Below are positions 1 through 52,300 of a stretch of DNA of 64,000 bases, one piece after another; positions within the stretch are counted from its first letter, which is position 1; each line of letters begins with the position of its first letter. The position numbers and the translations under genes are program-made. Where the stretch lies: the NCBI GenBank assembly GCA_964057225.1, contig OZ059899.1, positions 8,060,001 through 8,124,000 of the forward strand, read 5' to 3'. This stretch comes from Auanema rhodensis (lineage: Eukaryota > Animalia > Nematoda). Under the pieces are notes generated by a model. It worked only from the letters and a program-made list of their open reading frames with translations, was not told the DNA's origin and did no database searches.

Positions 1-23
1 AGCTACGTGTATTTTCTATTTAG

Positions 24-1958
24 GTAAAACGATGCTGCGATTTTATACCTATTGTTCACTGGGGATTTGATGAATCTGTTCAAGAAAAACTAAGACAGAG
101 AAAGCATAGACTAGTTAATCAAAATTTATCAAAAAGTCAGTTTTTTTTGTGTAAATAATAACCATTCGTTATTTTACAGAGGAGAAACAGATGATGACTA
201 ATGAGAAGAAGCAACGTTTTGCTAGAACAATTGGTGGTGTTCACACAACAGTTTCTGAAGTTTTAGATTGGATGAGTACTAGTATTGTCCAGAATACAGA
301 TCCTAAAGTAGCATTTGTTCGAATGATGGTTTTAATAATGTATGTCTTAGAAAGCTGAGGTCAAAAAATTAGAGCTCAAACAAACCAAGACGAAGAATAA
401 CTTGAAGACTGAAAAACCGCCCAAAAAAGTTATTACTCCGGTATGCCTAATGCTCCCTTTTTTTTGAATATTTCTATACTTTAGGCAAAAGAACTAGAAT
501 CGGAGGATTCATCTGATGAGGAGGAAGAGCAAAATAAAAATATGCAGAAACCAACTCCATTAAAAAAAATCGAAAAGCCTGTTGCGGCAGTTAAGTAATA
601 TAGTTAATGATCATTTTCTGTAGTAATTAATTCACTTAAGGCCCACTCCTAGAAAGGAGAACACGGAAGAGAATGAAGAAAAGGAAGATGGGAGTGTAGA
701 AATGTTAGATAAATCAATGGAACATGATAGTGACTCTACAGATGAGGAAACTGAGCAGGTTTAAATCGAGTTATTAATTTGATTACTTTGATTTTAATAG
801 AAATCCAAGAAAGGTAATCAAACTAAGCGTAAACCTACAGCCAGCCTAGGTGAAGTCCCTGCTAAGAAATCTAAGATTGACAAGGTTTAAAGTGTATACA
901 GGTTTTCAAAATATGAGAATGTTTAGGAATTAGAGAAGTTCGAAAATGTTGATATTTCAACCTTAGATCCCATTGAAAGCCGTAAAGTAGCTATGCTGAA
1001 ATTACAAAAGAAGATTGAAACTATGAAGAGTAGGTTAAGCGCTAGAAATGAAAATATTTTCATTTTTTCAGTTTCTCGAAAAGGCAGTAAAGGCGCCAGT
1101 GTTACCAATATGGAAGAAGAGAGGAAGATGAAAAGACGAATGAGTAAATTGAAAGGCAAACAAAAAAGAGCAGAAGAGAAAAAGGGTAAAGAAGTAAAGT
1201 AAGCTCAATTTTTACTGTCGTCATCGAACATATTATGTATTGTTGCAGAGCTGAAAGTATACCTGAAGCTAAATCTCCAAAAGAAGAAAATCTTCCTAGA
1301 ACAGAAGAAGGGAATGTAGTATATTCTAAATTTGACTTCATTGTAAAAGATGATAAGAAGAAAAAGAAAAGAGTATTGTTATATTCAATTTTTTCTTTTA
1401 TATACTACTCATTCAGATGAGCACTTCAGAAAAACGTGATAAATTCAGTGGAAAAGATTACAAGTCATTGTTGACTAAAGTGAGAGAGCAAGCTATTGTA
1501 TAATAATATATACTTGAAATGCCTTATAGGTCGAAAAACGTGAAGAGAAGATAGCAAAGTTGCGCGAAACAGAACCTGAAAGGGCAAAAGAAATGGAACA
1601 AGACATTAAATGGAACCGAGCTCTCAAAAAGGCTGAAGGAATCAAAGTGAAGGTATTGTTTTATTGACTATTTAACAATATATATACAAATATATTTGTT
1701 AGGATAATGCTGAATTATTGAAAAAGGGATTGAAAAGGAAGGAGAAACTGAAAGAGAAGAAATTGACTAAATGGAGTAACCGTGAAGAAAGAGTCAATAA
1801 TGAGCAAAATACTGTAAGCCTTTTTCTGTTATCGATTTGATTATTTATATGACAATTTGTAGAAACAAGAAAAGCGCAATACAAACCTTCAAAAGAGAAT
1901 TGATGATAAAAAGAAGAGGAAGTTACAGTCATTAAGAAAGAAAGGCAGAATTCTTTAG
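24..1958 (+). CDS. SURF6: Surfeit locus protein 6 (SURF6/RRP14) nucleolar protein, multi-exon, 5' end outside window
   Basis: Exons join in frame across short GT-AG introns. First visible exon after tttag at 24 reads ...FIPIVHWGFDESVQEKLRQRKHRL. Middle is Lys/Glu-rich. C-terminal SURF6-type signature VVYSKFDF...KWNRALKKAEGIKVKDNAELLKKGLKRKEK...LRKKGRIL ends at TAG 1956-1958. Confidence 0.9.
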
Positions 1959-2371: not shown

Positions 2372-5300
2372 TTTATTGTTAACTAATAATTTGTAAATGA
2401 GAAAAAATGTATATAATAAGTGACTCAGAACTCAAAAAGTTGAAATTTAACGAAATAATAGCTCGTAGAAAATAATAGGAAGTATAAACTTCAAAACAAC
2501 CAGAACAGTTGATAGGAAAAATTTGTTTGTCTGCAACGAAATATGCCATCTATTTGATGCCACAATTGAAAACAACAGAAAAAATTCATGCTGGAGATGA
2601 TCGATTATATCGAACTGAGTTAGTTCAATTCAAATCAAATAATAAATTAAAATTTTATCAAAAATGAACAACTTCTGAATGATATAACTACTGCTTTATT
2701 AAAGTATAAGAATGAATTGAAAGGCGACATGTAAAGAGACGGTGAAGAACCGAATGGCCTAACTAGTGAAAATGAATGGTTTTACACAGTATTGGCTGAA
2801 AGGGGCGATGGCAGAAACTAGTTAGAAATAGCTTGTTGTCAAAACGTTTGATAAAAACTAATTAGCAGAATATCACAATGCGACAACCATATTATATTAT
2901 GAAGACAAATGAACACTAAATGCTTTAACAGATTGTGACATCTGAGTTCCATTTTACAGTCAGGAACTAGAAGGAAGAGCAGCCACACGGAGGAAATGTT
3001 TCACAACTTGTGGCAAATAGTGAGCGACAGAGTGAAAGTCAACAATCCAGTGTATTGACAATTTCTGTTGCAGAATACAGAGGCTGTCTTTCGACGAACT
3101 CTCATTCATGCTGTCTTGTTCCTCCCTGTTTCTCTCATTCCTTTCATTTGCATTCTCTTTCGTACACACTATATCTTCTTCTCTTTAGTTCAAATTGAAT
3201 GTTCTTTTATGCTCTTGGTGGTGAGCAAGAATTAATCAAGAAGAGCATTGTTGGCAATGAGTCAGTTAAATCCAATCTGCTGCCGTGTTTCGAAATAGTA
3301 TAGGCCTGTTGCTAAGAAACATGTATCAACTTGCATAAACTGTTATAAAACAGTAGCATCCACCAAATAAATACTCTAAATTAGTAAAGTTGAAAGATGT
3401 ATGATCTGAAAAGTCAAAAAAAACATTAAGAAAGAAGATAAGTTTAAATATATTCTGAATAAAGTTGGTCAAGAAAAATAAGAAGAGTATCCTTGTTTTT
3501 CGAATGGCAGAGAAAGCGTATTGGAGGAGCTTAAATACTACTCGATTTCATTACCGGCTGCCTATTCTAACGATTTTCCTTTGTAATGACATAGACTATG
3601 GAGAATCGAAAAGTAGTCAGTATCAAGCCTCAAAACAGGTAGTGGAAAAATGATGAACAAAGAGTAGGCATTTTGATATGGAGATCGGTCATATTTTACA
3701 ATTTTTTGTATTTTATGAAAATCAATAGCAAAAATTACTAACTAATACCTAATCAATATGTTTATTTATTGTACATATATTAAACTTTACCAAAAAGGAA
3801 ATAATGAACAGGCGAGAATGTTATAGCTCTGTAGTTTATAGGAAATCACACATACAAAATGTGTCATATGAGGTCTCAGAATCGTTTTAAAAAATGGAAG
3901 AAAAATGAAATGGCTGGAAGTTGTAAATAATATTTTATAATTTAGCCGACACTAGTATTACATAAGAAACAGCAAATATATTTGTCACTTTTATGCTTCA
4001 TAAATCAATTGAGTATGTAAAATAAGAGAATAAACAATGTTCCTTAACCACATTACATAGACTAAATTAAGTTGAGGTTTGACGTCAAATCACTGTCTGA
4101 TATGAACGAATATTCTCGCTCAATAAGATATTAGATATAATATTATATACACGCTTTATCGCATAGCTTGCAGGAAATCTAAAATTGGCTTAAAGGGCCA
4201 ACAAAATCTCTATATTCTAAAGTTTATGGATACGCTTTTATAAGGAAAGACAAAATTATATCCAATGCAGAAGAGGAATGGCAGCAGAAACAGCTAGATT
4301 ACATGAGAAGAGAGAGAAGGGGAAGGAAGGGGACAATGAACAACAGATGTGAATGGATAAGCAAACCCATATATCTGTCGCTCAAAACAAGTTTATCGGA
4401 ATAAAATGATAAACGATCTCACTTGGTCTTCAAAACGCTAGGTTCACACTGATGTATTTAGTCTGACACGAAAAAGAGAGAGAAATTCGACCCGATGGTT
4501 GAGGTCGTTTTTAATTCTCTCCTGTTGTCATTTCAACTATGAAAAATAGTGGGAAACATGCCACCTTACGATCGATTGGATGATTTGTAAAAACGATAAT
4601 CAATATATGAGGTAAGTAGAGAATAATATTTTGATGGCATATTATATGAAAGTGTTTTATGATTTTAAACGTTTGTGGTGCAGGAAATGAAATCTCATAT
4701 AAATCTGGAATATTCAGTTCTGAACAAGGTAAAGTTTTATCCTGAAATAAGAAACATTTTAAATGTTCGTGTAATTCAAAAGACTTCGAAATTAAAATAT
4801 CGATCATCATCCATGCATATTTAATTTTATTTGAGTGTTTCTTCTTTCCTCTCTTTACATGACCATATGATATGCTCATACTCAGCTCATTGGTCTTTGG
4901 ACTCTGAGACTCTGGGCCAGTTCTGAAGCCGAGCAATGTATCATACAAAATAAAGTTAATTCAAATCCAATTTTACCATTTAAAAGTTTAAAAAATAATA
5001 ATGCTAACATTCAAAAGCAAATAATTGCACAGATCGGGCATGATGTCATAGTTGCATGTTTGATTTCTCCCAGGATAACTTAATGGAACATCGTTATATT
5101 ATTTTAACAAGAAAAAACGCCAGCATAGGTTGCAGGTTTTCGACGTCGTAGTTGTTGTTAAAACCGATGATGAGTCAACAGCAAAAAAAAAGATCTTGAC
5201 AACCGGCAATGACTCATTTTACCAATAAATAGTAAAAACCAGTAATTATTTATATTTCTAAATTCTCAGAAAAATAAAGATAAAAGGGGCAAAAATCTGT

Positions 5301-5382
5301 AAAACTAATAGATATATTTAATTTTCATTAAAAAAAACACCGGCAGACTACAAAAAAAATAATGATAAAACAATTATATTAA

Positions 5383-7461
5383 TTATAATGTTTTCTTCGT
5401 ATCATCACGACTGACAGATTTCTGAGGACGAAAAACCAAAGGTAAAACAAAATGAACAAGTAGAGCAATAATATGCCCCACGAAAAACACACGTCTAGAA
5501 GAAATAGAAGATTATACGCCTGCTTATAGTATGCAACTTACTGATATACAAAGAAAGAAGGACCGAAATTCATGGCAACAAATGGATAAGTTGTATATGC
5601 AAGAACAACCTAAATATTGATACCTGTCTCATTCAAAAATCACAACGTTACCTTAGCACCGAAAAAACAAAACACATCATAAACAGCTTTTTTATTCATA
5701 CTGTCCAAAAACCTCCATCGAATACATCTACGGAACTGAAATATATACATTTCCAAAACGCTTCCATTTATATATAATAGTTACAGTAGATCCAGCTAAG
5801 GTCATTAGGGCTCCGGTGAAGAAAGTCATGTAATATCCAGCTGAAATTCCATGCCAAACAGCTGAGAGAAGATATGTGGCAAATGTACGTACTCTGGAAG
5901 GACATATATGAAAAGTTGAGAAAGGGAAACTAGCTAACTTTATCGGAGTTCTGTCGTATGCGACACGGCGGAACCAACCACCAGTTAAAATGTTCCAGTT
6001 ATCCAAAGTTTCTTTGAAGCTTTGGGCCATCTTCAAATCATCATATCAATATTGTTTTTATAATATTTGCTTTATACCTCTACTTTATATGGTTTAACAT
6101 TAGTGCATAACTCCCATTTAGCATTTTCCTTATCATCATATCCGGAAAATCCAAACCCAGACATGTTGCACACAGCATCAGCTAAAGTTATATTGTAACC
6201 AGAGAAAATTTGAACTTTTACCAAATGTCCATGCAAAATAATAATTGAATCTAATGATAAAGATTACGAAAAACCAGAAGAAGAACCACTCCAAATAGGA
6301 CAATTCGAGAAACCTGAATCGAAAATTTAAGATGCAAAATGCAATTGTTTCACTCACTCATGACTGACAATATGATCAGGTTTGTAACGACTACCGAATG
6401 TAACGATAACAGCCAAGTAAATCAAAGATTCCCCAAATTTCTTCCAAGCAACAGTTTCAGGACAAGGCAACTGGGTAAAAGCTTCATATACTTTTGTAGT
6501 TAACCAAAATATACCTTTCCCTTCCCGTCTGGAACCACATGATGACCATCTAAAAATTTGGAATAGTCGGCATAGAAATTAATAGGTCCTGTTAAAGTTG
6601 TCTGAAACAGAATAAATAGAAAATATTATATAGAAAATTCGGACCTGGAAATTAAAAACAAACGACAAGTAATCCAATAGAGACGGCAATTCACTAAACG
6701 AAATAACTTTATATTTGTACAAAGAAAAAAGCACCAACTGAATTGCCTCTTTTTTTTGGATTTCAGTGAGATCTTCCTCTTTTCTTCCCTTACCATCATG
6801 TAAATTAAAAGCCAATGTTGTAATCTTTAAAATGATTATTCATCCGGGTACGTTAAAACTCTTACTTTTTGAACAGCTACCATCATTGGCCCTGTGATGT
6901 CAATACTAAATGAATCCAGTATAAGCCAACGATAAAAATGGATCCATAGCAGATAGCTCATAGAAAATAAAAATACAATACTGAAACAAATTAATTAAAT
7001 AATTATGTAATATAATTTTAAATTTACATATGGACTTTTGATGATGGCGCTTTTATCATGAGAATGTAACTGATAAAAGCATTAGTTAACAGATGTTTAA
7101 TAGCCCTGCAAAACTCAAATTACAATCTTTCAATAACAACGAAAAACCTTCCAAAACAGAAAAAGCTGATTATTAGGCCGACAGCTAGAGGAAAAGTAGA
7201 TCTAACCTATAGCATATTTCCTTCTAATGTATTAGCTTCTCGAAACTTACATTTCTGGAAACTTTTTTGGCAGGAAAATAATGTCGATAGATATATGCAA
7301 GAGGAAAGAAGGAAAACATACATAACGTGAAATTTACCTAAAAACAAACAAAAATAGATTAAAATATTACGTAAACAAACTTTGTCAACTTCAACTCCAA
7401 TTTTATCAGCCAAAGGCTGCAGAATCGTTGATCCATCGTAGAATGTATGGACTCCAGGCAT
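5383..7461 (-). CDS. MBOAT-family lysophospholipid acyltransferase (MBOAT1/2, oysgedart/mboa-3-like), tandem copy A
   Basis: Starts MPGVHTFYDGSTILQP. Motifs DITGPMMVAVQK, YYFAWTF, WNILTGGWFRRVAYDR and catalytic SAVWHG are present. Ends ...DDTKKTL* (KKxx ER-retrieval signal). Confidence 0.92.
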
Positions 7462-8580
7462 TTCGTTTATATTAACTTACATATGCCTTGAATAAAATAA
7501 GTATCAGAATAAATAGAGTATTAAAAGGCAAAAACATGAAGAGAAACGACAAGTATATCAAATACAAAAAAGGTAATCGATATAAAAAGACGTCTGATAC
7601 GACCATGAAAATACAACGTGTTTAATAGGTTTCTGAAAAGTAGGTTAAAAAACTAACAATGAGGTAACAATCAAATTATTGCTCTGATATAGAAAATAAA
7701 AAAATATTATGTCAGCATAATTGTGATCAAAATGTGAAAATTATCTTTTGGAGGAATTAGGACAATTACCTAACATATTTTGCTAAGCCTTAAAAGGGTT
7801 GCTGAGTCGGAACAAGATTATTTTGTTAGCATTCACTCTAAAAAGTTCTAACTATCAAAAAAAAGAGATAGAAATAGAAAAAGGATAGAAAAAATTGGAA
7901 CAGATACCAAACGATGGCAAGTCTTACGACGATGCCATCTTCGCAAAGCAGGACATTCGTTAAGCAAACATAACTCTGTTCAGCTGAGCAAAGTGCTAGA
8001 GAATGACGCTGAATTTGTTATTTGAACAAAAAATTCAACACATATTTGAAGGGAAAAATGCTACAAGCATGCGCAAGGTGAGGGTGACATTCATAATATG
8101 CACATGTAGACTGTTTTTCACAAGCTAAATTAATCAATAAACTTGTCATCATTGGTATTAGGAAATAATAAAATGTGAATATAAAGTGCAAATTAGCAAA
8201 ATTTGTGCTACGTTTTATCTATTTCGTGCTAGAATAACAGATTTGTAAACCTTTTTCAGAAGGGAAAAAACGTAATATCAACAACAATTATTATTATTAT
8301 TTAAATATCTAGATCATCGCAAGGGACAGAATAAATTACATTTTTTCCAGTTTTGTTTTGATTTTGAAAGAACGGTATTGTCATAAAAGGTCAAGCTTTG
8401 GAATTTGTGGTGTCCTACAGGCTAGCAATAGTGGGTGTCATGCAACTCGTAAAATCAGGCACGTTAGTACAATATAAAATGAAATTAACGACTAAGATAA
8501 AAATCGCGTATTATAACAATAATAATGCTCATGCATTCAAACGCTAAAAGTGCTAGCACAATCAACTATAACAAATCTAT

Positions 8581-10691
8581 CTATTGAGTTTTCTTGTGTT
8601 CTTTTTCTTGACCACTTGAAAGTCCACTAGTGGTATTATCAGATTTTTTCTTTTTTTCTGGTGGGAAAATCATAGGTAGAACAAATTGAATTCCTAAGGC
8701 TATAATGTGAACACTGAAGTAAATGCTCCTGGAAAATGGTGAATTGAAACCAGAAAATACAGGAAATCATACTTGTACATGGAAAATCCAGGATTCAAGT
8801 GCATGGTTGTGAAGGAATAAGTGGCATAGGCCAGAGCCACCTATAATACAATAAAAAAAGATAAGGAACACGAAGATTTTAGCAATTTAATACCTTGGTG
8901 GCCATAAACGTAACAAAGTCATAAATCATCTTCTGAGTCTTGTTGTTAACGAAACGGAATCTCATAGATCTGCGGAACTGAAACAAATAGGAATCCAAAT
9001 TAATTGAAAAAATAATTATCATCATACAGTAGCACCAGCTAAGGTCATAAGAGCACCAGATAAGAAAGTGATATAATATCCGACAGATATTCCATGCCAG
9101 ATGGCAGACAAAACATAGGTAGCAACAGTTCGGATGCTATAATCAAGAAATCATATATGTATATTTCAGGTTTTAAATAAACTTTTTAGGTGTTCTATCA
9201 TAAGCAACCCGACGAAGCCATCCCCCAGTCTGGGTGTTCCATCCATCAAGTGTTTCCTTAAAACTCTGAGCCATCTCAACTTGAAGAGGCTTAACATTTG
9301 TACAGAGATCCCATTTAGCATTTCCTTCCTTATCATAACCAGAGAACCCGAAACCAGCCAAATTGCAAACTCCATCAGCTAAAACAATTCAAAATATAAC
9401 TAGACTCCAAATTGTCGTAGTACCGAAAGTCCAAGCAAAGTAATAGTTCACTCGGAAAAGGAAGATTACGAAGAACCACCACCAAGCCCATTGAAGGAAT
9501 GGAAGTTCGAAATATTCCTTTTCAGCAATTATTTCAGTTGGGTATTTTCCAACATAGAAAACGACAATATATAAATAAACAAAAGACTCAGCAATCTTGC
9601 GTAAAGCAATGCCAACAGGAGATGGTTTCTGAAAATTTTCATTTGAAAGAATTCTCAATTTCAATTTATACTTTTCCATTTTGGTTTGGTGTGATGTTTG
9701 TTCCATCTAAGTATGCAATGTAATCAGCATAGTAGTTCAAAGGTCCAGTAAGAACAGTCTAAAAATCATTAAGTAAGGATGTAAAAAACAGTGTTGCAAG
9801 TTGTTCAGAGACAGAATTGAAGCAACAACATGTCAAGGGCATATACAAGAAGATGTACGTATTTTCAATTTTTTTTCAAGTTTTGGAGAAATTTAAAAAA
9901 AATCAGCATACCTGGAAGTTCAAAACATAAGAAAGGAAATCTAACAATGCTGGCATTTCATGAATAGCTTCTTTAGCTTGGAGTTCAGAAAGAGATTCTT
10001 TTTTACGACCACGACCATCATGAAGAGAAAAGGCAACGGTTGTAATCTACAAGCATTTTTAATGTAAAGATTTTCTATCAGTTGATATCCAACTTTTTGA
10101 ACAGCAACCATGATTGGTCCAGTAATATCAAGATAGTAGGATGTAAGAAGAAGCCAGCGGTAGACATGAATAAAAAGAAGATATCCTACTGAAAACAAAA
10201 AAACAGCTCTGAAATAAAAAAATAATTTTTGAACATAACATAAAGCTCACATGTGAACATATTTTGGTGGAAGAAAACGCATCAAACCATAACTAACCAG
10301 AATGTTGGCTAACAGATGCTTGATAGCCCTAAAACAAAATTTAAAGATTCAGAATAAAATTAAATTACAAACCTTCCGAAACAGAAGTAACAAAAGAATA
10401 GCCCAACAGCTAAAGGAACCACAGAACGTACCTACAATTTGGAATAGAGGGAAATATTATATACCATTCAATATACCTGACGTGATACTTTACTTGGTGA
10501 TAAAAATTTGTAATATACATATGAAAGAGGTAACGATGCAAACATGCACATTACAAAATTAACCTAGAAAAAATTAATATTTGCACTATATTAAAACTAT
10601 ATAAGCTCACTTTATCTACGGAAACTCCAGCCACATCTGATATGGGCTGAAAAAGCGTCGAGCCATCATAGAACGTTTGTTCACTTGGCAT
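8581..10691 (-). CDS. MBOAT-family lysophospholipid acyltransferase, tandem copy B
   Basis: Starts MPSEQTFYDGSTLFSP. Motifs DITGPIMVAVQK, YYFAWTF, WNTQTGGWLRRVAYDR and SAIWHG are present. Ends ...EHKKTQ* (KKxx). TTTTCAG at 10702-10708 lies just upstream of the ATG. Confidence 0.92.
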
Positions 10692-11892
10692 CTTTTACCC
10701 TCTGAAAAATAAATTTATTTGTGTTTTTTGAAATTCTCGAACAAAGATTGAAATGGATGCAGGAAGGAAAAATACACATCTTATGAAATAAATGAAATAT
10801 ATTAATGAATTCTTTGTATTCTTGTCCCTATCACAAAGTCTATGATACTAAGCTACAGCAAAATCAAAATATGTGTAAATTTTCATGATAATGGCAGCGA
10901 TGAATAGCATGCGAATTTAATATAAAGCAACGCATATACGAGAGAAATGCAACTATATTTCAATTATATTAATCAACATAAATTATGAATAGAAAAAACA
11001 AAAATAAATTTGTGATATTGGTATGATGAAAAAAGACTACACGGGAACTTAATGAGCTTTCTTAAAAATTGGAGCATAGCGTTTGGCTTCATCACAGTTG
11101 TTTATATTTTTAGCTTAGCATCCAATGGCAATAATGAAAACAGAGAAAATAAAAGTTTGTAATGGAAAAGTAAATGTTTCATGATTCGAAGAAACAAGTA
11201 ATCAGCAAAGCATTAAATCATTGAGAAACAGCAGGTGCTGCACAAAGGTTAAATGATTGAAATGAGATTTCGGAGGACGAGGTGCGACGTGTCAGTGGTG
11301 CGCTCGATCACACCACCCGTATCGTTTGTACGCGCGATCGAAGGGCAACTGATAAATGTTTTACTGGAAAAACCTCTGCATAAGGAAATAGCTGAAGTGA
11401 TTTTTCTCCCTTTTCTTCCGTAGCTGATTACACGAATGATAGACGGGTATGCTGATATGAAACTACATTCACAAATTATCGGTCCCAAAAGCACGAATAT
11501 GATACTCTGACCGTATGCTATCGTTATTCCAATATCATAAGGCATGCTTGTAACAAAATATGAACTGATAATGTGAAAGAAAGAACGGAGAATACTGCCG
11601 ATATAAGAGGTGGACTTCGCCCCTGAACGTGGTTGTACACGGGAACAAATTGATAGAAATAATAATAACTCTTCATAATCAAATTAAATAACATATTGAC
11701 TTTTAAATGAAAAAATAAACAATGCCCTGATATGAGTACAATGAGAACAATGTGAAAAATAACCAATTCAATTGGTTAATTGACAAGAGGTCCGCTTCTT
11801 GGAGACGTTGACCGGAAATGAGCAATAATCAAAATTATGTACAGTTCTATATACAGATAGATTACACATATTGGTTTTATACACATTACATT

Positions 11893-13315
11893 CTAAGTTG
11901 CTCCGTATTTTGCATATAAAGTGCTGTATACGAATCTTAGAATTTCATTTTCAGCCTTGGCCCGATTTTCAGGTTGTAAACCATCCAGAGCGCGATTTAG
12001 ACTGATACTAAAAACATCAGATGCTTGGGATTGTGCATTTTGAGGAGTAGGCTCCTGAAAGCGAAAGTCTGAGAACTCGTTAACGTTAGAACTGCGAACC
12101 TGTGGATCTGGATCAGGCTTTTCTTCTTTTTTACTTTTTTTGGGTGTAGGTTCAACACTATCTTGCTTAGGAATATTTTTTAGTAAAGTATCTAGAATAG
12201 AGGAGCATAAATTATCCCGATACTCTACATCATCTTTCACAGATTCAATCGATGTACTACAAGCAAATTATATCAATTAAAGAAGGAATTTTAGAAAACT
12301 CACTTTATAATACTAGTTTCATCATTTTCTAGGAGACGAGCAATAGCAGGAATTAAAGATTTTTCAGATTTGTTGGTACAATTTTCTTTTATTTCTTTCG
12401 AATTTTGGAGTTGGGCAGCTAAATAATGATAAGGATTAAAATATCATTCATACTAACATACTTATTCTTTGACGCTCTTTCAACAAGTCCTTGTTTTTCT
12501 GATCTAATGACCGTTCTCGTACTTCACGCAATCTATAAATTCCATATTTAATCATAGAAATTACAGGTCATGACTAACTCTTCCTGGTTCAGATAACAAA
12601 TATGGTCAAGCGATGCGGGATCTTCAAGAAAATATTCACCAGAAATCTAAAAAAATTTCTGTATACAAGTATGCGATGAACATTTAACTAACCAAAATTC
12701 GAACATATTTTTTTCTTGACTTGCATCTTGCGCATGCATAATTATCAGCTTTTTGATGATTTCTTCTATGTAATATGAAACGATAATGTCGGTTTGTTTT
12801 GGGATCACAGTATAGGACAGCTTCTTTATCAGAATGATCTAAATTTAGAGTTTTAGTTGAATAAAACGAGCGTCAATGGGAAATAATATAACTTCGACAG
12901 AGGGCAAACGAACATGAGAATGCAAGAAAATGAGAGAAAATAGAGAGTAAAAAACAAAAATGGATAAATACAGAGTAAAATCAAAAATAATGGTAAAGAA
13001 AGAAAACATACCGTTCATAGGTACGATTTGGCCCTTCCAATCCGTAATCACTTTTTTAGTGTTTCCCACGGAAATAATGTTTTGAATTCCACGCTCTTCT
13101 CCTTTCTCCTCATCTGAAACTGGAAAAAAGTTCTAGCAAATGACGACAATCAGAATAACACAGTAGTAAGAAGTTTTTTTTTCCTTTTCTCTGATATCAT
13201 GATCATAACGACATAGAAATACGGAAAAATGAAGAAGAAAAAGTACAAGACAATTCAAAGAAAACATACCGTCTAGCATTTCGGTCTTAAATGCCGAAAA
13301 TAGAAATGAGGACAT
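11893..13315 (-). CDS. Putative nuclear protein with a nematode CCHC zinc finger (RYYR-CCHC/FLYWCH-like) and a C-terminal BESS-like motif; start uncertain (13315 or 13279)
   Basis: Spliced exons give ...RHYRFILHRRNHQKADNYACARCKSRKKYVRIL|ISGEYFLEDPASLDHIC..., an NLS-like PTPKKSKK, and C-terminal DVFSISLNRALDGLQPENRAKAENEILRFVY. Splice sites checked are canonical GT-AG. Confidence 0.7.
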
Positions 13316-19300: not shown

Positions 19301-22300
19301 GTATTGAGATAGAGGCCCGGAGGACATTTACAGACATTATCGATACACTTAGCAGCGTTGGTGCATCGATCCTTATAAACATCACATGGCTGACCATACT
19401 TTAGTTGCTTTGGGCGAAGTGCTGAATTATAACTCTTCTGATATTTAATGGAATAACTCTGATATATGCTGAACACATGTTCAAGTTGGAAGTTTATACT
19501 TCTTCAAAGTATTTTGGAAAGCATTCTATATAAAACAATGTTTGAATAACGTTATGTTTAATTAAGCAACATTTCAATGTGTCAGACATGGTAACGATAA
19601 AACAGGCTAATTGTGAAAAAGGTAAACAAATTCTGTAAGAGTTGGGTGGTGAGAAGAGCAAATTTAGGTAAGTATAGAATGCTTCCAAGCGTACTTGCTA
19701 CACTACACTGGAAACATTCATTTTATGGCTTATAAGATATATTAATATATAAATATTATAAATATAAATAATAAACATAAATATATACGAACAAATATAA
19801 AAATTATTAGAAACAAATAAGTTAACTGTACATCTGTCAGACCGTACATACGCTACGAGATGTTAGCACTAGTTACACACTCGGCATAATTATTTTGAAG
19901 CATCTTATTAACGAATTAATTGGAGAAAAAATATCTTAAAAAGAACATGAAAACAATACATGTGTAAAAATCATTTTTAAATTATATATAAACATATAAT
20001 AAAGCAAAGTATATTATACTTGTTGCTCAATTAAATTAATTATGCAAAAAACATGATTAGAAGAAATCCTATAAGTGTAAGCATACGTTACGTATGGGAA
20101 CTTCTTTTGGGAAGAAAAAGGTCATTGAGAATTAATTACCACGATTTACAACAATTATACTCCTCGGTGGCAAAACCGCCTGAGGTAATATAGCAGTAAG
20201 AGCGTGGGGGGCAATTGGGTTCTAATCCATTGCATAAAATAAGTTTTCCGTATGAATCTCGGGTGGCTTCATTACCTGGCGGACAGTTACCGTTACCAGA
20301 GCCACCAGTTTTGTAGCTAGCTACACTACCAGTTCCCGATCCGGATCCGGAACTTGAAGTTGTTTTTGGTTTTGGTTTTGGGCGGCGGATGGGAGGGCCG
20401 ACTACACGAGGCTTTTGCCCTTCGGCACGGGCGGGAGCTCGCGCAGCTACAGTGACTAGCGGTGTTAGGGTAGTTGATTGGATAACTCTTTGGTTTTCGT
20501 ATTCCGATGACATTGACGATTGTGATTGTTGGATTTCCGGTTCAGCGTGACCCGAAGCAGGCTTCTGCTTCTCTGACAGGACCCGATGTCTGGCATAGGA
20601 AATCGGGATCGGACGTTCACCGATTTCAATTTCTGGAAAGCGTTCTGTTAGTAGGAGCACACAGCAAATAACAATTTAAAAATTAAGCTAGTTTTCACAC
20701 GTTTGGTAATTGCTTTGTCAAAGCTGGCAAAAATAGCTTTCCATTCATCTTAATCACTTGATGATTTAGATGGAAAACCATTAGTTTTAAAAACACAGCA
20801 CTCAATAAGCACACCAGAACTTGAATAGAAGATTCATTTATTCAATATTGTTCTTGTATTTAAAAAAAATCTGTATCGATATGAACTATTAAATGTACCT
20901 TCAAGAAGTTCGCAAACTCCAGCGTTGTCTACTGTGCCCGGTCGGCAACGACATCTTCCAGCTACACAAAGCTTTCCTTCTCCACAGTTATTATCATTTT
21001 CACATTCTGTTGTCGCAGCTAAAACATTAAAAATAGGGTTATATTATAGAAAAAGTAGTATTACGATTACTAATGGTTTCTTGAGTGGTCATTTGGCTTA
21101 CTGAAGCACCGGGAGGAACTTTACATTCAACACCAAAAGCAACTTGACCACGTGGGCACATGCAAATTAGTGTGTCGTCATCACATCTGTGAAAAAGATG
21201 AAATGAAAAAATAAACTGGTTTCAAGAAAATACTTAGATCCTCCTTCACATGTTTCTCCATTTTCACAGCTTTCTAGAGGCTTGGCAAAGGTTTTCATTT
21301 GAGGTGTTGTAGACATTGGCATCTGTACACAGAATCCTAAAATATCAAAAAAAATTATATTTATACTCCTGGCTGTATTCTCACCAGAAAGAGCAACAAA
21401 TTGTGGAGCACAACGACATTGTCCTGAATGACAACTGAAAAGCAACCGATCAGTAAAGAGGTTAAATAACAAATAATTTTCAATAATTTCATTTTTTATG
21501 AAAGAAGTTGAGTGAGCGGCTGCTCATGGATTTGTATGTAGTTCACCTTTGAAAAGTTTTTTTTTCAAATATTCTAGAAAAATTTAGAGATTCAATTATA
21601 ATTGAAATTGATTCACGAATAATCGGAGATGAAATAAAAATGAAAACTGCTGTCTCTGCAACATTGCTAAATTCAATGTTAAACTGTGACTTAATGAATA
21701 TTTTGAAAGACAACAATTTATCACAAGATTTTATAAAGGTAATATGTTACATTCTTTAACATATTATTGAATGTTTTTCATTTTAAGGCCATAATAATAG
21801 CAAAAATTGAAGAATTTGATGATATATTTCAGATAATATCAAATCATTTGGAAGAAGAAATTAACTTTGCAGAGAAAAGGGTAAAGTCCAGGTGTTTGTA
21901 GAATTTTTTTTTATTTCATAAAACTAGAATCACGAAATTGCAAAAATTATTTATGGTTTTCAAGATGTCATAAAAACATCATTGCATACAAAGAAGTTAA
22001 AGAAGAATCATAAAAGTAATATTTGAAGAATTAACATTCAAATATTTTTGATTTGTTTTAGATAGAAGTCATCAAATCTTATCTGGTGATTTTACTATAT
22101 TACAAGGGATGAAAGATCAAGAGTATGTTTCTGATATACGAAAAAATTATTTCTTATAATATTCAGAAAAGATATAGTTAAGTTTATTAATGGAACACCT
22201 ATACGTATGTATATTTTATTTTTTAAAATTTTTTCTGTGAATTATTAAGGTCCAAACTTTACATCATCATTTGCATTGAATATGATTCAAAATAAAAATG

Positions 22301-25300
22301 AATCTCCTTCAGAGCAACAAGTAAAGTCTAAATGGTATTTCAAATGAAATTCATAGAAATTTATCATTTTTTGTTTGTTTTTATAATCTAATGTTTCGAA
22401 ATATTTAGGATTTTACCAGAAAATATTGATATTGTACGTATTAATGAATTAAAGAAGCAATATTTAACACCAAAGAAAGGTAATTCAAATTACAGATTAT
22501 TTCTATGTTTTTGATTTTACAGAAAACTCTTTCAGTTATTATACACCTGTTCGTAAGTTAAAGTTTATTTTTTCTATTTTCATCTTTTTTTTTCAAAAGG
22601 TCCGCGATATGAATCAAAAGAAGCTCAAGAAATGCTAAGAAGTAATCGAAAAACTATTGTTTAATTTTTTAATTTCAAGTTGTTTTTTTTTTATGTTTGT
22701 TTTTAATTATACTTAAATAAATATCATGTATATGTATTACCTGCTTCCATTGATACAATCTGTATTAGCATCGCAGCTTTCTCCTGGTACAGCTTGACGA
22801 CGTGTTTGAGGTTTCTGTTCTTCGACACATGTTCCATCTTTTATAAGTGGCTTATGGCTAGGGCAAGCACAGTCCTATATATTTATGATGAAAAACAATA
22901 AATTGAAAAAAAATTTTGACGTACCCAATCGTCGTTACAAGTAGATCCTCCAGTACAAGTTTGACCGTCACTACAATCTTCACCTGGCTTAGCAAGTCCG
23001 GGTGTTGTAGAAGAAACAGCCGCTGGAATTCAATAAAGGTTAATATGGAAAATGTTATAATATATGGTTAAAGTATTAAATTATATATTGTATAATAAGT
23101 GTAAGTAGCTGAAACAGCGTTTTTAAGCAAGCAAAGCGTTATATGTGAAGCACATTACTCACACAAGGACACAACGACAGATAATATATTAAATTATTTT
23201 TATTAATAAATAAATTAAAAAATTATTATGTGTTACGACAGACATGAATAGGCGGATTAAAGGAAAGAATGACTTAATTCCATACATTATACTTTAAATA
23301 AACATGAGTAATTATGAAATATAATATGATACTGTATATCGACTTGTTAATAAGATTTCAAACATTTGGACTGATTTTTATATCCAAAACAGATAACTAT
23401 ATTCGATATTCGATATACGGTATAAATTAAATTAAATGATTATGATTGGCAAGTTATTTAATTCTTTCTCCGCTTAAAGAATTCTGATTTTTTTCGGTTT
23501 GCTTATGTGCACTGAGGTGTTGATGCATTTAGGGAAATAGTGCTGTAGAAAGACATATAGTTGACCACTATGAGGACCAAAGAGAGAAGAAGGACGGTAG
23601 TCTCAAACCTTGATGACGAGCCTTGCCACGTACTTTGCGTTTACCGGCTTCAGAAGGTGGCACACAGCCATCGTTGTGCAAGATGTGTCCATCTGGACAC
23701 TGGCACGACTTGTTGATACAAATCGTGTTACCCCTAAAGATGCAGAGTGAACAAGCTGAGCTTAAAGCTTAAGCTTGATCTACTCCCATCCGGCTCGTCT
23801 TTTGCAAAAATCAATGTTTCATGTGCTCTATCAATCATTCCTCACACGTTCTTTCTCAACTTACTTTTGAATTCGAAAAATAATACAAAACAAACATTTT
23901 TTCTCAAAAAATATGTTTCAAAAACGAAATGGTTTAATATCACGGTTCAGGCTAATTGTGAAAACAAACTGACGTGTATTTTCTTTAAGCTATTTTGTAC
24001 AGAGAATTCAGTTAGTTTAATTATTAGAAACAAACGTTTGTTATTGTAAGTATAATACGTTCAAACATTCAGTTAACTATATGTAATTATAATTATATTA
24101 TAATCTGAAAAGTGAAAAAAGCACACACACGCACAAACATGAACAATTTTTTTTGGTATTGCATACCGCTGGATGGGAGCAGCCAAGATATACATATGGC
24201 AGAAGCATAAGTGCATACCTACAATAGAGGCCAATAGCCTCACATTCATTTTTGCTACCAGAATATGATGGTGTTGACGTGGTTGTTGGACGAGTTGATG
24301 AAGCATAAGCAGTTGTGGAATAGGTAGAAGCAACAGAAGACGAAGCTGATGTTGGATTTGGTGAAGGTCTTCCGTAGTGACGATCTACGTTATGACCATT
24401 ATAGCCGGATGATAGTGATGTGTATTCAGATGTTGGTACGTTATTACGTTGGTTACTGTTGTAATCTACGACAAACGGCACATGCGTGGGCAATTCGATA
24501 AAGTCGACAGGTCGACGTGTTGCTGGTTTCCATGTTGTGCTGGCTGAAAAGGTGTATTAGGCTATACAAAGGTAAAAAGCCAGCTGTTTCGAATTCGATT
24601 ATCATTTCAATTAAAGTCTGAAGATATTCAATGCATATATCGGCTTGTTGATTTTCTAGAATTGTGTCATGCACGTTAAATGATATATACTAACAAGCAT
24701 GATGCATAATCGAAATATTCGTCTATTTGATATTAATATTAGTAGTATCGAGCGTGCGTTAAGCTATGAAAACATAATTTCATATAAAGACCTTACCTTT
24801 AGTTGTGGTTTGCGTTGTTGTTGTTGTGGATTCACAACGTCCATTCTGAGAAGCATGAGTACCTTGAGGACAAACACATAAGCCATCAAGGCACATAGAG
24901 CCTCCAACACATGAATCAAGAGGTCCACATTGATTTCCGGGGGTAACCTTTCTACCTTGATGGATAGTACTAGGTAAAGCATTGAAAGTATTGACTTGCT
25001 AAATGGTTGGTATTACAAAGCTGTTTCAAACAAACTAAGTACTGGCTGAGCTGGTTTATTTGTGACAGATAATACCGAAGCAGTTTGGTACACAGGAGCA
25101 GTTGGAATAGATGTAGTATATACTGGTACAGTCTAGACAATAGTTCAACTTCAAAATACGATAACGAATAAAATTTTTACCTTTGGTGGAAGAGTTGGGC
25201 GAATTCCAGATTGAATGCAAATGCCTTTCTGTACGATCATTGATGGATCAGGGCAAATGCACCATCCTTCGCGGCAAACACTACCTCCTGTGCATTCACG

Positions 25301-35532: not shown

Positions 35533-35651
35533 TGCACGGAGTGGGATTTGAACCCACGCCCTCATACGAGGACCAGAACACTCAGCGGCTTGATTCTTGC
35601 CGCAAGATAATATCTTGAGTCTGGCGCCTTAGACCACTCGGCCATCCGTGC
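35533..35651 (-). tRNA. tRNA-Leu(CAA) with ~35-nt intron
   Basis: Minus strand reads GCACGGATGGCCGAGTGGTCTAAGGCGCCAGACTCAAG-[intron]-TTCTGGTCCTCGTATGAGGGCGTGGGTTCAAATCCCACTCCGTGCA. Acceptor stem, A/B boxes, long variable arm and a downstream T-run terminator are all present. Confidence 0.95.
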
Positions 35652-40279: not shown

Positions 40280-41964
40280 ATGCTGCAGTTCTCATTCGGT
40301 AGAATCTTAAGCTTATTAATGATAATCACTCAACATCTATTTTAGGAAAATGTCTACTTCTTGCATGTTTTCTACCAGTTAGGTATATTATAGTAACTAT
40401 TCATTCTATTATTAATTTATATTTATAGCTTGGCACATTTAGCTGATTTTGGTGTACCCAACTATTCATGTAATGATGAGCTAATGAGACCAAGTAAAAA
40501 AATTCCTACAAATGTCAATTCTGTACGCCCAGCTGATATTAAGGTTGTAATGGCATTAGGAGACTCATTAACTGCAAGTTATTCATTTTCTTTTTTCTTC
40601 ATTTCATATATTTTATTATTTTTTATTGTATTATTTGTGTTATATAATATTATATAATTAATTAAGGCTGCTAATGGAGCCGGTGCTGAAGATCCAATTG
40701 CTGTCGTTCTACAGTACAGAGGTTTAGCTTTCCAGGGTGGAGGAGATCACACTTTAGATACACATGCTACTATTCCAAGTAGAATCTATTTTTTATTTTT
40801 CAACTATTGTATGTATCCTTTTCCAGATATTTTGAAGAAATATAATCCAAACTTATTCGGTTATTCTAATGGTATTGGCTCTCCAAATGTTTGGGAAGTA
40901 GCAAGACTGAATGTAGCCATGCCTGGAGCAGAGGCAAAAGATTTGCCTGGCCAAGCACGTCAACTAGTTGCTCTTTTGAAACATCATACTGAGGTACAAA
41001 ATTTGTGAATCTTTCTTAATTATTATTTTTTTGAAATACTTAGGTGGTTAATTACAAGAATGATTGGAAACTTTTGAATATTTTCATTGGCGGAAATGAT
41101 GCATGTGGTTACTGTAGACATCCAGTTAGTTGATAAGATTTTCAGATAAAAAACATAAAATACTATGAACCATTAAAGGATTACAATCCTCAACAATGTG
41201 CTGATCATGTGGCCGAAGCTATCAATGTTATTTACCAAAATGTGCCACGTGTAATTGTATCAATCACTGGAATGTTACAGCTTCAAATGCTTCGACAAAC
41301 GGATAAGGGTCATTTCTTCTGTACAAGTATACATAAGTAGGTTATAGGAAAACAATATTCATACAAAATATACAAAATTATTACCAAAGAAAATACTTTA
41401 ATACGTGAAATAGCTTAAAGTTTATTGAAAATTATCAAAAAAACGTATAAAAAGTGAATTTGTTATGAAGAATATTAAGTTTTCAAGTTTATCTTATATT
41501 TCTAGAGATGAATGCGGTTGTGAACTCAATAAGACAGTTACTGATCAACAACTTGGTCAATATGGTATTGCATACACAAATGGAGAAATTGAAATTCAAA
41601 ATAGTGGAAGATTTGAAAATGATAATTTCACTGTTGTTGTTCAACCATTCTTACGAGACGTTGTTGTACCCCCAGCTAATCAAACCTTCTTTGCTCCTGA
41701 CTGCTTCCATTTCTCTCAGTATGGACATGGAATCGTAACTACTTGGGTATGGAAAAATCTTATGGAACCAACACATTTGAAAACAACCAAAGGATCAGTT
41801 AATGAAGGAGCATTACCCTTAGCGTGTCCTGATCCCGTAAGTTTTCTTTTGTTTTTGCTTAATTTTAATTTTAAATTTAGTCCTGTCCATACATTCGTAC
41901 GGTTAAAAATAGCAAAGATTGCACACCATACTTAACACCTGTAGCTGATAAGAGAATCAACTAA
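40280..41964 (+). CDS. Secreted phospholipase B1-like GDSL/SGNH lipase
   Basis: Signal peptide, then SVRPADIKVVMALGDSLT|AANGA, LNVAMPGA, DWKLLNIFIGGND, FTVVVQPF and FFAPDCFHFSQYGH (catalytic S, D, H). Ends ...DKRIN* at 41964. Confidence 0.92.
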
Positions 41965-45864: not shown

Positions 45865-45932
45865 TCACTTTCTTTCTTTCTTTTAGTTTGAATCCGCTTC
45901 AAATAATAAATCCATATTTAACTTTGTTATAG

Positions 45933-47367
45933 ATGACGGTCTTTACCAAAAAAGATGCTACAGAAGAGAAAAATACTTCAGAAAAAGAGGTAATACTTAA
46001 TAAATTTTATTATTTTATTTATGGTTTATTATAATTTTATTTACTTTGTAAATATTTAGGTACCAAAAGTAGTGGTGTCTGGTAGCTTGTCACCTAGTTC
46101 TCCTCCCGATGAAAGACATATCAGTAACTGTGGCTGGATACCAATGGAAGGAGGAAATTTTGACAGGTATTTCAATAATATTAATATATTTTTTATATTA
46201 TTTTCTATAATTTTTAGACCAAAGGAAAAGAGATCTTCATCATTTGGACCATTATCTATTATCCGTCTATCACCATCACCTTTGGCACGTACACCATCTC
46301 CTTCTCCTCCAGATTATGATAGCGTTGATCAAGAAAGAAGGTATAAATTGAATAATTTCTGTTAATAAATTAAATTTTTTTTTCAAATTGATAATTAAAA
46401 TATTTTTTTTTAATTTGTATTTTAGGTTCCGAAAATGTACGAAAGTTATGCTTCTTCTCTGTATTCTAATGGGTATTGGAATGGGAACTGGATTCTATTT
46501 TTATCAAAAATCTTTAATAAAGTAAAATAAAATTTTTTATTATTTACTTATTTACTCAAGCGTTTCCTATTCTTATATCACTTTTTTTCTTTTAAGTGCT
46601 GCTTATAAGAGAGGAATTTATCATGGATGGAATGCTGCCGTATATAACAATCGTGGGGTTCCTGAACGACTTGAACAGAACGTCGAAGTTAATCAAGATC
46701 AGGTAATTATTATTCATATAGTTAAATCTATTTGATTCACACCGTTATAGTCTTACGAGAAAATTGATGTTCCACGATTTGGCTCCAATCGTCCTGCTGT
46801 ATTTCTTCACGATTTCAAGCAGGTATATAAGCTTAATTGAAGAGTTTTCATTGAAAAACTGTTTAGAACTTGACAGCCATTGTTGATGTTATGGGAAAAC
46901 GTTGCTTTGTTAAGCAACTTGATCGAACCACTGTTGCTGCTCCCCGCAATCTTATCGATATGCTTCGTGGAATTGAGGTAATTTCAGCATATATGGTAAA
47001 CTATTTTTCTAAATCATGATTTCAGTCAACCTCAAATCCATCAACAGAATCACGAGTAGTACGTGAAACTTTCCGTGTTGGCGATCAATTGAACGAGGAG
47101 CAACTTGATGCTTTAGGCTCTTTCGTCATCACTCGTCATTGCCAATTCAGACCCGTCTATATGCTTCAAAAGACTGGTGAAAGCCAAGAAGCTAGACGTG
47201 TTAGACGAGGTCAGTTATAAACCTTTCTCGTATTCTCATCTAGTTATTACAATTACTTTAACAAAAACCAAATAAAAATTTTATTTTCAGCTAGCGATGT
47301 AATGGAATCCTTGGACTTCGCTTCAATGGGTGGTGATGCCGTAGAAGTTGATACAATTGAGTTTTAA
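45933..47367 (+). CDS. ITM2: Integral membrane protein 2 (ITM2/BRI) family BRICHOS protein, type II membrane
   Basis: MTVFTK start and TM segment VMLLLCILMGIGMGTGFYFY. BRICHOS signature YEKIDVPRFGSNRPAVFLHDFKQNLTAIVD...RCFVKQLD...HCQFRPVYML. Furin-type RRVRR, then a short C-terminal peptide; TAA at 47365-47367. Confidence 0.9.
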
Positions 47368-48307
47368 AGCTCAATATCATACAAATTCATCCATACGAGA
47401 ATATTATTATTCCATTATATCAATAGATATTTGGATTGAAGAAATTTAATATTTATTTGTAAATAAGAAAAAGTTCAGAAATTTTTCGTATTTTGTTTGG
47501 TTCAAGATCTGTTTGATGTTCTATGTCAAACGAGTGTTTTTCACTAAAAATTGTATTTCTTTTCTCGTTTTAGCTCACATGATCGTCGTCTTTTTCAATA
47601 TTTCTTCTATATTATTTCCATCGTTATCATCGTAGTCATTCACAAACCATAATTGTTATAATTATTTTTATTATTTCCGTTTTATTTTCTTTAATATGGC
47701 CTACGTGTTTCTCTTTCTCACACCCTCCCTTCTACCCCCAACCCCTCCCCCTTGAAAGATCAGCGGCAAAGATGAAAAAATCAGACATAACATGTAAACT
47801 TACGTTTTTGTATTTTTATTCTCTTGACCTATTCATAATTATATTTTCAAAAAGTTATATACATATATATATATATTTTTATTATATTTAAAAATATATT
47901 TGATAATATACAGTATAAATAAGTTTTTTTTGTTATTCTGATTCATTCATTTGACTGTACCGTTTGTAATCACTACGTGATAAACCTTCTTCAAAAATAA
48001 GTATTATATATGTATTAAATGAAACATAAATAGAGTTCAGTATCAAGTTTAATATATTTATATTTATTATATTAAACTATTTTATTAACTTACAGGTGTA
48101 TATTTTAATGTTTATTCTTAAAAAATATGAGATCCGCGATAAAGAATTGTCAGATAAATAATTTGTTTGTTTTTGTTTATTGTTGTTTTATTAAATATTA
48201 AAATTAAAACAACAATAGCTACATTAACAAAAACAACAACAACCGCATTTCATTTCTGTACTATTTAAAATGAATTATTTGATGATATTAACTAATTTAT
48301 AAATATA

Positions 48308-49377: not shown

Positions 49378-52300
49378 CTATAATGATATTGATGTGACCT
49401 GTGAATCGACAACCTGGGAATTATGTATAAAACGACTGCAGAAACCGTCTATTTCGTCATGGCATTCTTCAACTTCTGAACTACGCCCAAAACAAGGTGA
49501 GCCTCCTTCAGAAGGGGAAGGGGAAAGACAACCACGAATTCTGAATAGTTTCACTTGATAACTACAACACTTATGACTAATGTATACCGTGTACGAGAAC
49601 CGATACCACAGTTTGCAACACAAGGCGACCATTCATTCCAGGCCGACCAGTCGCCGTCGCGAGATTCTGAAATTAAAATCAGAATATCAAAAAAATTTGA
49701 GAAATGATTATATGAAAAATCTGTAAAAACAGTGTTTGAGTGCGCATTGCATTCCCAACTTGTGAAATGTTGTAAAACTTAAGAAATTGATATGAAACAT
49801 GCAAACTTTAAATATTTCTTTTGATTAATGCAAAAAAAAGAATTTGGATTATAGTTTTTCGAAATTTTTACTTTTTTTTCTTTTTTTTTGTTGTTTTGCC
49901 AAAAAAATTTCAAAAAAAAAAATGAAAATAAGTTTGATATACATAAATACATACATATATACACTAATCTCAAACACCTATACTATCCATCTAAAACTAA
50001 ATACCAAAACAAAACTTTAACTCGATGACTATTATATACCAACCCGGACAAAAATTCAAGTTACAGATGGAAGTTTGTACAGCCAAACCCCGACAGGGTG
50101 ATCCGGCCCCAGATGGTGTGGGGAAATCACACGAACGGAACCGAGATTGTAAAGCAAATCCGCAGCTTTTCGGACATTCCGACCATGCAGACCACAGACT
50201 CCAACTGCCGTCACGATCAGCTAAAACAGAAAAAAAACGGAAAATGCTATCAACTGATATGTGTAAACTAGAAAGCATGATAACGATTAACTAATTAGAA
50301 AAAATAAAACAAAGAAGTGAGTGAGTAACAGTTAAATGAAAAATAAAATAAAATTGTTAATTTGAAAGTGTTAGTATGTTAGTTGTTGTTTTTTTTAAAA
50401 TTAATTATAATTAATATTGGTTAATGAGTTATATTATTAATTATATTTCTTTTTTCTTATAGTTATAAGGCATTGTCATCGCAGCATAGAAGTTTATATC
50501 CTAAAACAAACTTACAATGAGTACACTTTGATGGATCAGAACAAGGTTGAAGCTCAAAATCAGAACCGAAACATGGTTGACCGCCTTGTGATGGACGTGG
50601 ATTAGAACAGAATCTATGCATCAATCCATATTTGTCAAAAAATGAGATAAGAAACAAACCTTGTTCGACTACGGTGGCCATTTGTACAGTAATCTGAACA
50701 TTCGCTCCATTCTGTCCAATCAGTCCAACCTCCGTCAATTGGTTTACCACATTGCTGCAACAAAACAAAATTAATAAATATATAATATTTTCATTGAAGT
50801 AAAATTAAAAAAAAGAAATTGATAATAAGAATAGAAACCTCGTTTGATTCACAGCTTCGTTGATCAAATGAGTAACCACTACAGTATGGACCTCTTAAAT
50901 ATAATGATTATATATTTATATATTTTAAATATAATAGATTACTTGTTTGCAGGAATTGGCTCACTACACATTCTATTACGAATTTGATGTCCAGCTCCTT
51001 GACAGTCTTTAGAACAAACGGACCATTCAGACCATAAAGACCATCCACCAGGAGATGATATACAATTCTAAATATTATAAAAACACTAATAACAACATAG
51101 TATATAAATTAACATACAGTAGCAACACATGGACGTTGTTCAAGTATCGGTCCTGAACAGAATCCTTGAACAGCTGGATCAGCTATTCTACAGAATCGAC
51201 GACGAGTTTCTGTTGATGTGAAACAGGAACACGATGACCATGATGACCATTGTGACCATGCTGGATCTAAATCAAAGATAAATAATTACATGAAACATAG
51301 TTTAACTTACATTGAACTTCTGTAATTTCTCGTGTCTTGTGACAAGATGGTGAATCAGGACATGCTCGTGTTTCAAACGATGGACCAGAGCACTAAACAG
51401 AAATGTTTTAAGCAAATGCTGAGAATCAAAACCTGGAAAATGAAGAATGCTGTACATCTACGTCGTCTTGTTTGAATTCCATTATCACCGCATGTAACAC
51501 TACATTCTGACCAATCAGTCCAAGCAGTCCAATGATTTCCTTCAACAAAAACTAAATTTTGAAGGAACCTTATCAACTTACCTTGCATATCACAAGTGTT
51601 CAAGTTGCAGCTTTGTCTATCAACTTGTAAAGGTTGTGGTGGACATTTGGACCCAATACAAACTCTAGTTCTTAAATAACAAATATATATAATTGAACAT
51701 TCATAATATAAAAATGTTTTAAAAAAATTAATTTACCTTCTCCTTGTTCCCCCACCACAACTAGCGCTACATTCCGTCCATTCATTCCATGAGTTCCAAT
51801 CTGTTTCTGAATCGTCCTCATCTCTTTCATTAATGGGAACTATTCTTTCACCGTGGGCAACAACCTATTCAAAGTTTTCGAACTGTTTCTTGTTTCGCTT
51901 CAAATCTTTCTTACCTTTCGTTTACCCTGACCAGTTAAAATTTCAATTGCTCGTCTTTTGCCATTAAATGGTTCTTGTAGTGAACACCATCGATCACAGG
52001 TTTCCACTTCAATTGGTGATCCAAGACATCGTTTTCCGTTAGAAGCATTGGAACAAATTCTACTTCTTTCATGAATTTCCGTAGATGAGCAGGATAAGCA
52101 TGAAGTCCATTCTGACCATTCATTCCATGTTGGTTCAGCACAAGGCTGATTGACACAACGTCGTTCGCGTTTTCCTTCATGAATCGAGCAATCTCCTGTA
52201 TTGAATTATTCTTGTTAAACTAAAACCAATAATATCCAAAACCTTTCAAGCATGATCGTTCGCGAATTTGTGTTCCTTCTCCACACGATGCTGAACATTC

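Follow-up and report, generated by a model that had tools for sequence, protein, structure and literature searches.

An antisense gene model nested in an lgx-1 intron of the nematode Auanema rhodensis, with a possible role as a CDK-regulated protein

A minus-strand chitin-deacetylase gene of the nematode Auanema rhodensis contains one intron of 1306 nucleotides (nt), and the locus raises the question of what fills it, how that content came to lie there, and what it might encode. The gene lies in a 64,000-nt stretch of contig OZ059899.1 (assembly GCA_964057225.1, forward-strand positions 8,060,001 to 8,124,000), the whole of which is called the window here. An earlier note on this DNA had proposed that the intron is occupied by a complete ten-exon gene read from the opposite strand. 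Here, we rebuild that gene model, weigh it against chance, compare the host intron with those of other nematodes, and consider what the predicted product may do.

A predicted coding gene on the opposite strand of the host intron

Rebuilt from its coordinates (Table 1), the model comprises 10 exons totalling 690 nt, which read as 229 codons and a TAA with no internal stop, separated by nine introns that all have GT-AG ends (54, 49, 47, 46, 44, 45, 74, 43, and 47 nt). The predicted gene occupies 87.2% of the host intron, and the host acceptor lies 91 nt from its ATG, so that the figures of the earlier note (87% and ~90 nt) were accurate, as were its count of in-phase introns and codons; 76 nt remain behind the gene. 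The note had also stated that the exons are too short to surface in the track of open reading frames (ORFs), and the plus strand of the region indeed holds no ORF of at least 50 amino acids (aa). The AATAAA that it had placed after the stop is present as well, and is weak support, as the hexamer occurs at its background frequency (1.8 per kb in the window). The plus-strand gene so predicted, at 21526-22664, is nested antisense inside the lgx-1 intron, an arrangement that is of a known and common kind in animals. It shares with other nested antisense genes the placement of a whole gene in a single host intron, on the opposite strand and unrelated to its host, and is distinguished by how fully the intron is filled, by the short DNA left on either side, and by recent nesting.

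A parser without a codon model, which drew on splice-site matrices, intron lengths and the avoidance of stops, was trained on 55 introns of other genes in the window (44 of them 42-54 nt long). It scored the host intron at 18.8 on the plus strand and 2.4 on the other, against 3.7±1.2 (maximum 9.5) for 600 dinucleotide shuffles, none of which came near the observed value. On the same scale, non-coding segments score 2-6 and real genes of the window 13-30, including MBOAT genes outside the training set. Median intron length is 47 nt in the nested gene and 49 nt in the window; on the plus strand, T exceeds A in 9/9 introns and A exceeds T in eight of the ten exons, and an in-frame stop is present in eight of the nine introns. 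A codon-position model derived from other genes ranks the modelled frame best in 9/10 exons, with totals of +12.4 for that frame versus -23.8 and -47.4 for the others. The modelled frame is the sole open frame in eight exons, and the bias of bases by codon position is significant (p=3.5e-7). A real coding gene is thus very probable. The opposing account, in which the apparent gene arises by chance from AT-rich intron sequence or is a recently inactivated duplicate, could appeal to the weakness of some splice sites and to the lack of any homologue in exon-by-exon searches. We regard it as very improbable given that no shuffle approaches the observed score, that the codon bias is frame specific and independent of the splice model, that the protein contains a repeat with a matching intron, and that 229 codons run without frameshift or stop.

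The ends of the model are less secure than its middle. Left to choose freely, the best parse recovered only introns 2-8, started at ATG 21640 and read through intron 9; low scores were given to the donor of intron 1 (0.6) and, among the acceptors, to those of introns 3, 6 and 9. Intron 9 is nonetheless supported, because without its removal the second copy of the protein repeat would not be read. Exon 1 was modelled from 17 open codons upstream of 21640 together with the low-scoring donor, and is fairly likely to be as drawn, which makes ATG 21526 the likelier predicted start. Translation from ATG 21640 would instead give a product of ~209 aa lacking the first 20 residues; exon 1 and intron 1 would then be promoter or outron, with the acceptor at 21587 serving as a trans-splice site and ~150-200 nt of intron left for a promoter. 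The blind parse chose this start, its context (aaaaATG) and the poor intron 1 donor are in its favor, and "intron 1" contains two TTTGAA hexamers, although that hexamer is common (2.8 per kb). Against this less likely start stand the 17 preceding codons, open in the same frame, which is the sole open frame of exon 2, and the GT-AG intron of 54 nt that links ATG 21526 to them.

Table 1. Coordinates of the nested gene model, its signals and repeat, and the surrounding host features (positions are those of the window)
Feature	Position	Strand	Remarks
Exon 1	21526-21533	+	8 nt, ATG; least certain exon
Exon 2	21588-21738	+	aa 3-53; predicted long helix; contains alternative ATG 21640
Exon 3	21788-21880	+	aa 54-84; acidic amphipathic
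Exon 4	21928-22015	+	aa 85-113; lysine-rich patch at end
Exon 5	22062-22122	+	aa 114-133
Exon 6	22167-22204	+	aa 134-146; TPI of repeat 1 at end
Exon 7	22250-22334	+	aa 147-174; remainder of repeat 1
Exon 8	22409-22479	+	aa 175-198; TPKK at 22467-22478
Exon 9	22523-22552	+	aa 199-208; TPV of repeat 2 at end
Exon 10	22600-22664	+	aa 209-229 and TAA; remainder of repeat 2
Repeat copy 1	22195..22305	+	aa 144-165, spans intron 6
Repeat copy 2	22543..22655	+	aa 206-227, spans intron 9
AATAAA, candidate polyadenylation signal	22716..22721	+	51 nt past stop, 19 nt before host donor
G+C-rich patch, candidate promoter or 5' untranslated region element	21510..21525	+	most G+C-rich 14-mers of intron
Host intron, phase 2, inside EB module	21435..22740	-	1306 nt, GT..AG
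Host exon 5' of intron	22741..22874	-	
Host exon 3' of intron	21385..21434	-	

An old host intron with derived content

The host gene carries 18 EB modules within one exon, its protein has relatives in Heterorhabditis, strongylids and Caenorhabditis, and a search with its terminal exon returned proteins named LGX-1. By these resemblances it is the lgx-1 orthologue, a chitin deacetylase, and it shares with C. elegans lgx-1 (C54G7.3) the EB modules, a lustrin-type terminal exon and a polysaccharide deacetylase domain. MBOAT-like genes, read by eye, lie downstream of the host, and C. briggsae lgx-1 likewise has an MBOAT gene downstream. A tree of the EB region left the species unplaced among Heterorhabditis, strongylids and one Logan sample, which makes it a clade V rhabditid. 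Removal of the 1306-nt intron gives a stop-free, in-frame host join that completes an EB module.

Five other nematodes, compared as the earlier note had suggested, have an intron at this codon in the same phase: it measures ~61 nt in L001, ~48 nt in C. auriculariae, ~85 nt in T. colubriformis, ~54 nt in C. briggsae and ~45 nt in M. spiculigera, and in all five of these it holds no gene. Because the same intron is short and empty in these species, the nesting is very likely a derived insertion. The host intron is old, and its predicted content is derived. The A. rhodensis gene differs in this respect from its orthologues, such as that of C. briggsae. In the sequence of events that we favor, an intact gene already equipped with introns would have moved at the DNA level into the old, formerly short lgx-1 intron in this rhabditid lineage, keeping little beyond its coding exons and being read from the opposite strand. 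Nine introns, all of genome-typical length, exclude retroposition and with it a retrogene, and they make birth in place unlikely. Carriage by a transposon or Maverick element was also rejected, as there were no transposon ends and no flanking repeats beyond low-complexity matches, and exon 2 had no viral or metagenome relative.

Several observations on the host accompany this comparison. By eye, two tandem MBOAT-like genes occupy the minus strand at 4900-10710, downstream of lgx-1, and between them and lgx-1 a 115-codon ORF (11893-12240, minus strand) forms part of a small gene with a parse score of 12. The host donor at 20898 can be joined in frame either to the terminal lustrin exon (20650-20136, minus strand) or, through an intron at 20898..19422, to an exon at 19421 on the same strand that leads to the deacetylase domain. 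These two 3' choices recall the isoforms of C. elegans lgx-1, in which the deacetylase domain is present on only one of two predicted transcripts (PMC3396651).

A close relative is represented by contig L005 (Logan run SRR31646600), with 83% identity to 20027-20885; it covers that interval, short of the nested-gene intron. No other close relative was found in the protein collection, and in the lustrin exon the identity is 80% at the protein level. A segment of the host intron preceding that exon (20651-20838, minus strand) is non-coding, with no conserved reading frame, and is 87% identical in L005, whereas four-fold sites in the next exon are 64% identical. This segment, 690-875 nt before the ATG of the nested gene, is a candidate splicing or transcription control element, and could govern either the choice of host terminal exon or the nested gene.

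A predicted helical N-terminus and a duplicated CDK-site module

The predicted protein falls into two halves of opposite charge. Residues 1-103 are acidic (isoelectric point (pI) 4.5) with an amphipathic pattern, and exon 2 alone is predicted to form a 33-residue helix (predicted local distance difference test score, pLDDT, 86). Residues 104-229 are basic (pI 9.95) and mostly predicted to be disordered, and contain all seven prolines. The three full cyclin-dependent kinase (CDK) consensus sites named in the earlier note were found in this half, TPIR at aa 144, TPKK at aa 195 and TPVR at aa 206. The expected number of such sites is 0.14, none of 2000 shuffles reached three, and three of the four S/T-P pairs are full consensus. 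Two of the sites match the Cks1 docking pattern, with a KEN between them at aa 198-200, and the C-terminus is TIV.

The best internal match of the protein aligns aa 144-165 with aa 206-227 over 22 residues without a gap (score 43, P=0.012 from 1000 shuffles). Both copies share TP, RP, an aromatic residue at +6, Ser at +8, Ala at +11 and Met-Ile/Leu at +14/+15, and both are hydrophobic at +11, +14 and +15. Introns 6 and 9 are both in phase 1 within an Arg codon, at the same base of the repeat, a coincidence with a chance of 0.011. That a phase-1 intron cuts both copies at the same base implies that an exon-intron-exon unit was duplicated, so that the shared Arg codon and the internal duplication at which the earlier note had hinted are both borne out. 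In the predicted protein, the two TPxR sites begin a duplicated 22-residue module, whose extent beyond TPxR is new here.

Homology searches were made exon by exon, with queries of 20-50 aa. Exon 2 found no meaningful match among 1.84 billion representative sequences and no relative in metagenome and viral contigs, and neither exon 2 nor exon 3 had a meaningful match in the ESM Atlas. Seven exons had no match in Pfam, including the securin, Cip/Kip, geminin and SLD-2 families, and six exons returned only chance-level rows from PDB sequences; the exon 2 helix, searched by structure, matched only generic helices (Z<5). The joined model had no match at E<1 in the fetched lgx-1 loci and no paralogue in the window, and Rfam placed no family in or around the host intron. 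The earlier note had called the gene an orphan. No homologue emerged from these searches, but orphan status is not established, because queries of 20-50 residues are too insensitive to exclude a diverged member of a known family.

A possible role in cell division

These features are best read as those of a relocated CDK substrate that evolves fast, with a predicted helical N-terminus and two modules that would each pair a phospho-site with a helix. We consider it somewhat probable that the product acts in dividing cells as a docking protein switched by CDK1, with a CDK-regulated role in division. In a product of 209-229 aa, the acidic helical N-terminus of ~100 residues would probably oligomerize or dock on a partner, while the basic, mostly disordered C-terminal half would present the three TPx[K/R] sites. 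Each module would consist of the TP, the aromatic residue at +6 and an amphipathic stretch at ~+8 to +17; CDK1 would phosphorylate the module threonines in dividing cells and thereby switch partner binding on chromosomes or spindle, and two copies of the module would provide avidity. The earlier note had supposed a somatic host, in keeping with the expression of C. elegans lgx-1 in soma and pharynx (PMC3396651). A host active in the pharynx and a guest active in dividing cells would be transcribed in different cells, and polymerase collision would be avoided. Taken whole, a relocated gene encoding a CDK-regulated protein is the best explanation we have, and one that we hold with modest confidence.

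A number of results weigh against a cell-division role. One duplication gave rise to two of the three CDK sites, which therefore do not count as independent, and the KEN is expected ~0.16 times from composition (an estimate). The modelled protein lacks a D-box, a cyclin RxL and a polo-box motif, and also a PP1 motif; the region 21300-21700 contains no CDE-CHR composite element, for which reason a DREAM-regulated promoter was rejected. The 91 nt that separate the ATG from the host acceptor contain one G+C-rich patch but neither an E2F nor a CDE-CHR element, and lone TTTGAA hexamers occur at background frequency. No exon searched led to a homologue, with queries too short to exclude a diverged family member. 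Moreover, C. briggsae lgx-1 is on a 21.5-Mb record, which we take to be the X chromosome, and the Caenorhabditis X chromosome is poor in germline genes, contrary to a germline role. The product resembles multi-site CDK1 substrates (securin IFY-1, Cip/Kip CKI-1, geminin, SLD-2) in being small and partly disordered, with clustered [S/T]Px[K/R] sites and a KEN, and differs from them in having no D-box, RxL or Pfam match. A securin- or cyclin-type substrate of the anaphase-promoting complex/cyclosome was rejected on the missing D-box (RxxL); the model contains one KEN.

These points would suit a lineage-restricted relocated gene with no role in division, for instance a sperm- or stage-specific one, which is a less probable reading that still deserves serious weight. 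Its TP sites would be there by chance or be targets of MAPK or GSK3, or its PxRP cores would bind SH3 domains; a PDZ domain may recognize the TIV at its C-terminus. The case for it draws on there being just two independent CDK sites, on the absence of D-box, RxL and CDE-CHR and of homologues, and on the G+C content of the nested coding sequence, 26.8% versus 38.6% in neighboring genes, which inflates Lys. Set against it, counting the duplicated pair once still leaves two independent full sites, unlikely from a mean of 0.14 (~0.01 by Poisson, an estimate), and three of the four S/T-P pairs are full consensus.

A more specific form of the division reading, that the product is a diverged ska-3, the SKA3 subunit of the Ska kinetochore complex, is doubtful, as are the details that follow from it. 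In that case SKA-1 would be the partner of the N-terminal helices, and the duplicated repeats would tether the protein to the Ndc80 coiled coil under CDK1 control. A SKA-3 is known from C. elegans (PMC9930252). The N-terminal coiled coil of human SKA3 extends to residue 101; in the CDK-site-rich tail that follows, Ndc80 is bound through phospho-Thr358/360 together with a helix at 368-377 (PMC6927755; bioRxiv 10.64898/2025.12.06.692780). The layout would be alike in the two proteins, with ~100 putatively helical residues and then a disordered tail with CDK sites, and the spacing from Thr360 to the helix, +8 to +17, is that of the TP site (phospho-Thr in the human protein) and the short amphipathic stretch in both repeats here. 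The differences are several: 229 aa here versus 412 aa in the human protein, two near-equal modules, a basic tail, and TPIR, TPKK and TPVR in place of the human TPTP (358-361). No searched exon found anything SKA-like in PDB at E<=10 or in Pfam, and the family was picked after many others had been considered. Short residue matches to human SKA3 are an unconfirmed lead only, and the N-terminal one can be placed in either of two registers separated by 17 residues, a behavior expected of coiled-coil periodicity in general. Possible resemblances to Nnf1, Mis12 and borealin were dropped as generic helix patterns without Pfam support. We speculate, at similarly low confidence, that a cell-division gene, possibly ska-3 with a duplicated Ndc80 tether, moved, introns included, into an intron of 50 nt in a pharyngeal gene, where it would be left with flanks of <100 nt on each side and would use conserved upstream host-intron DNA as its control region.

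Elsewhere in the window, an intron-containing tRNA gene at 35533-35651 on the minus strand (Rfam RF00005, 52.3 bits), missed by ARAGORN in the run made here, reads by eye as tRNA-Leu(CAA). SURF6-like (1-1960, plus), phospholipase B-like (40346-41935, plus), BRICHOS/ITM2-like (45930-47370, plus) and ADAMTS-like (49380-56100, minus) genes were likewise recognized by eye and served only as the source of training introns.

The locus offers a multi-exon gene of a sort that length-based ORF tracks miss, and, with an empty intron in five outgroups, a polarized case of recent gene nesting. A relative at ~64% four-fold-site identity is already in public data and would be useful for selection tests in the A. 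rhodensis genome. If the product is not a division factor, it is one more nested gene, of value mainly for annotation. If it is a diverged SKA-3, or a different segregation factor under CDK1 control, the duplicated module would amount to a natural experiment on the number of Ndc80 tethers at a holocentric kinetochore.

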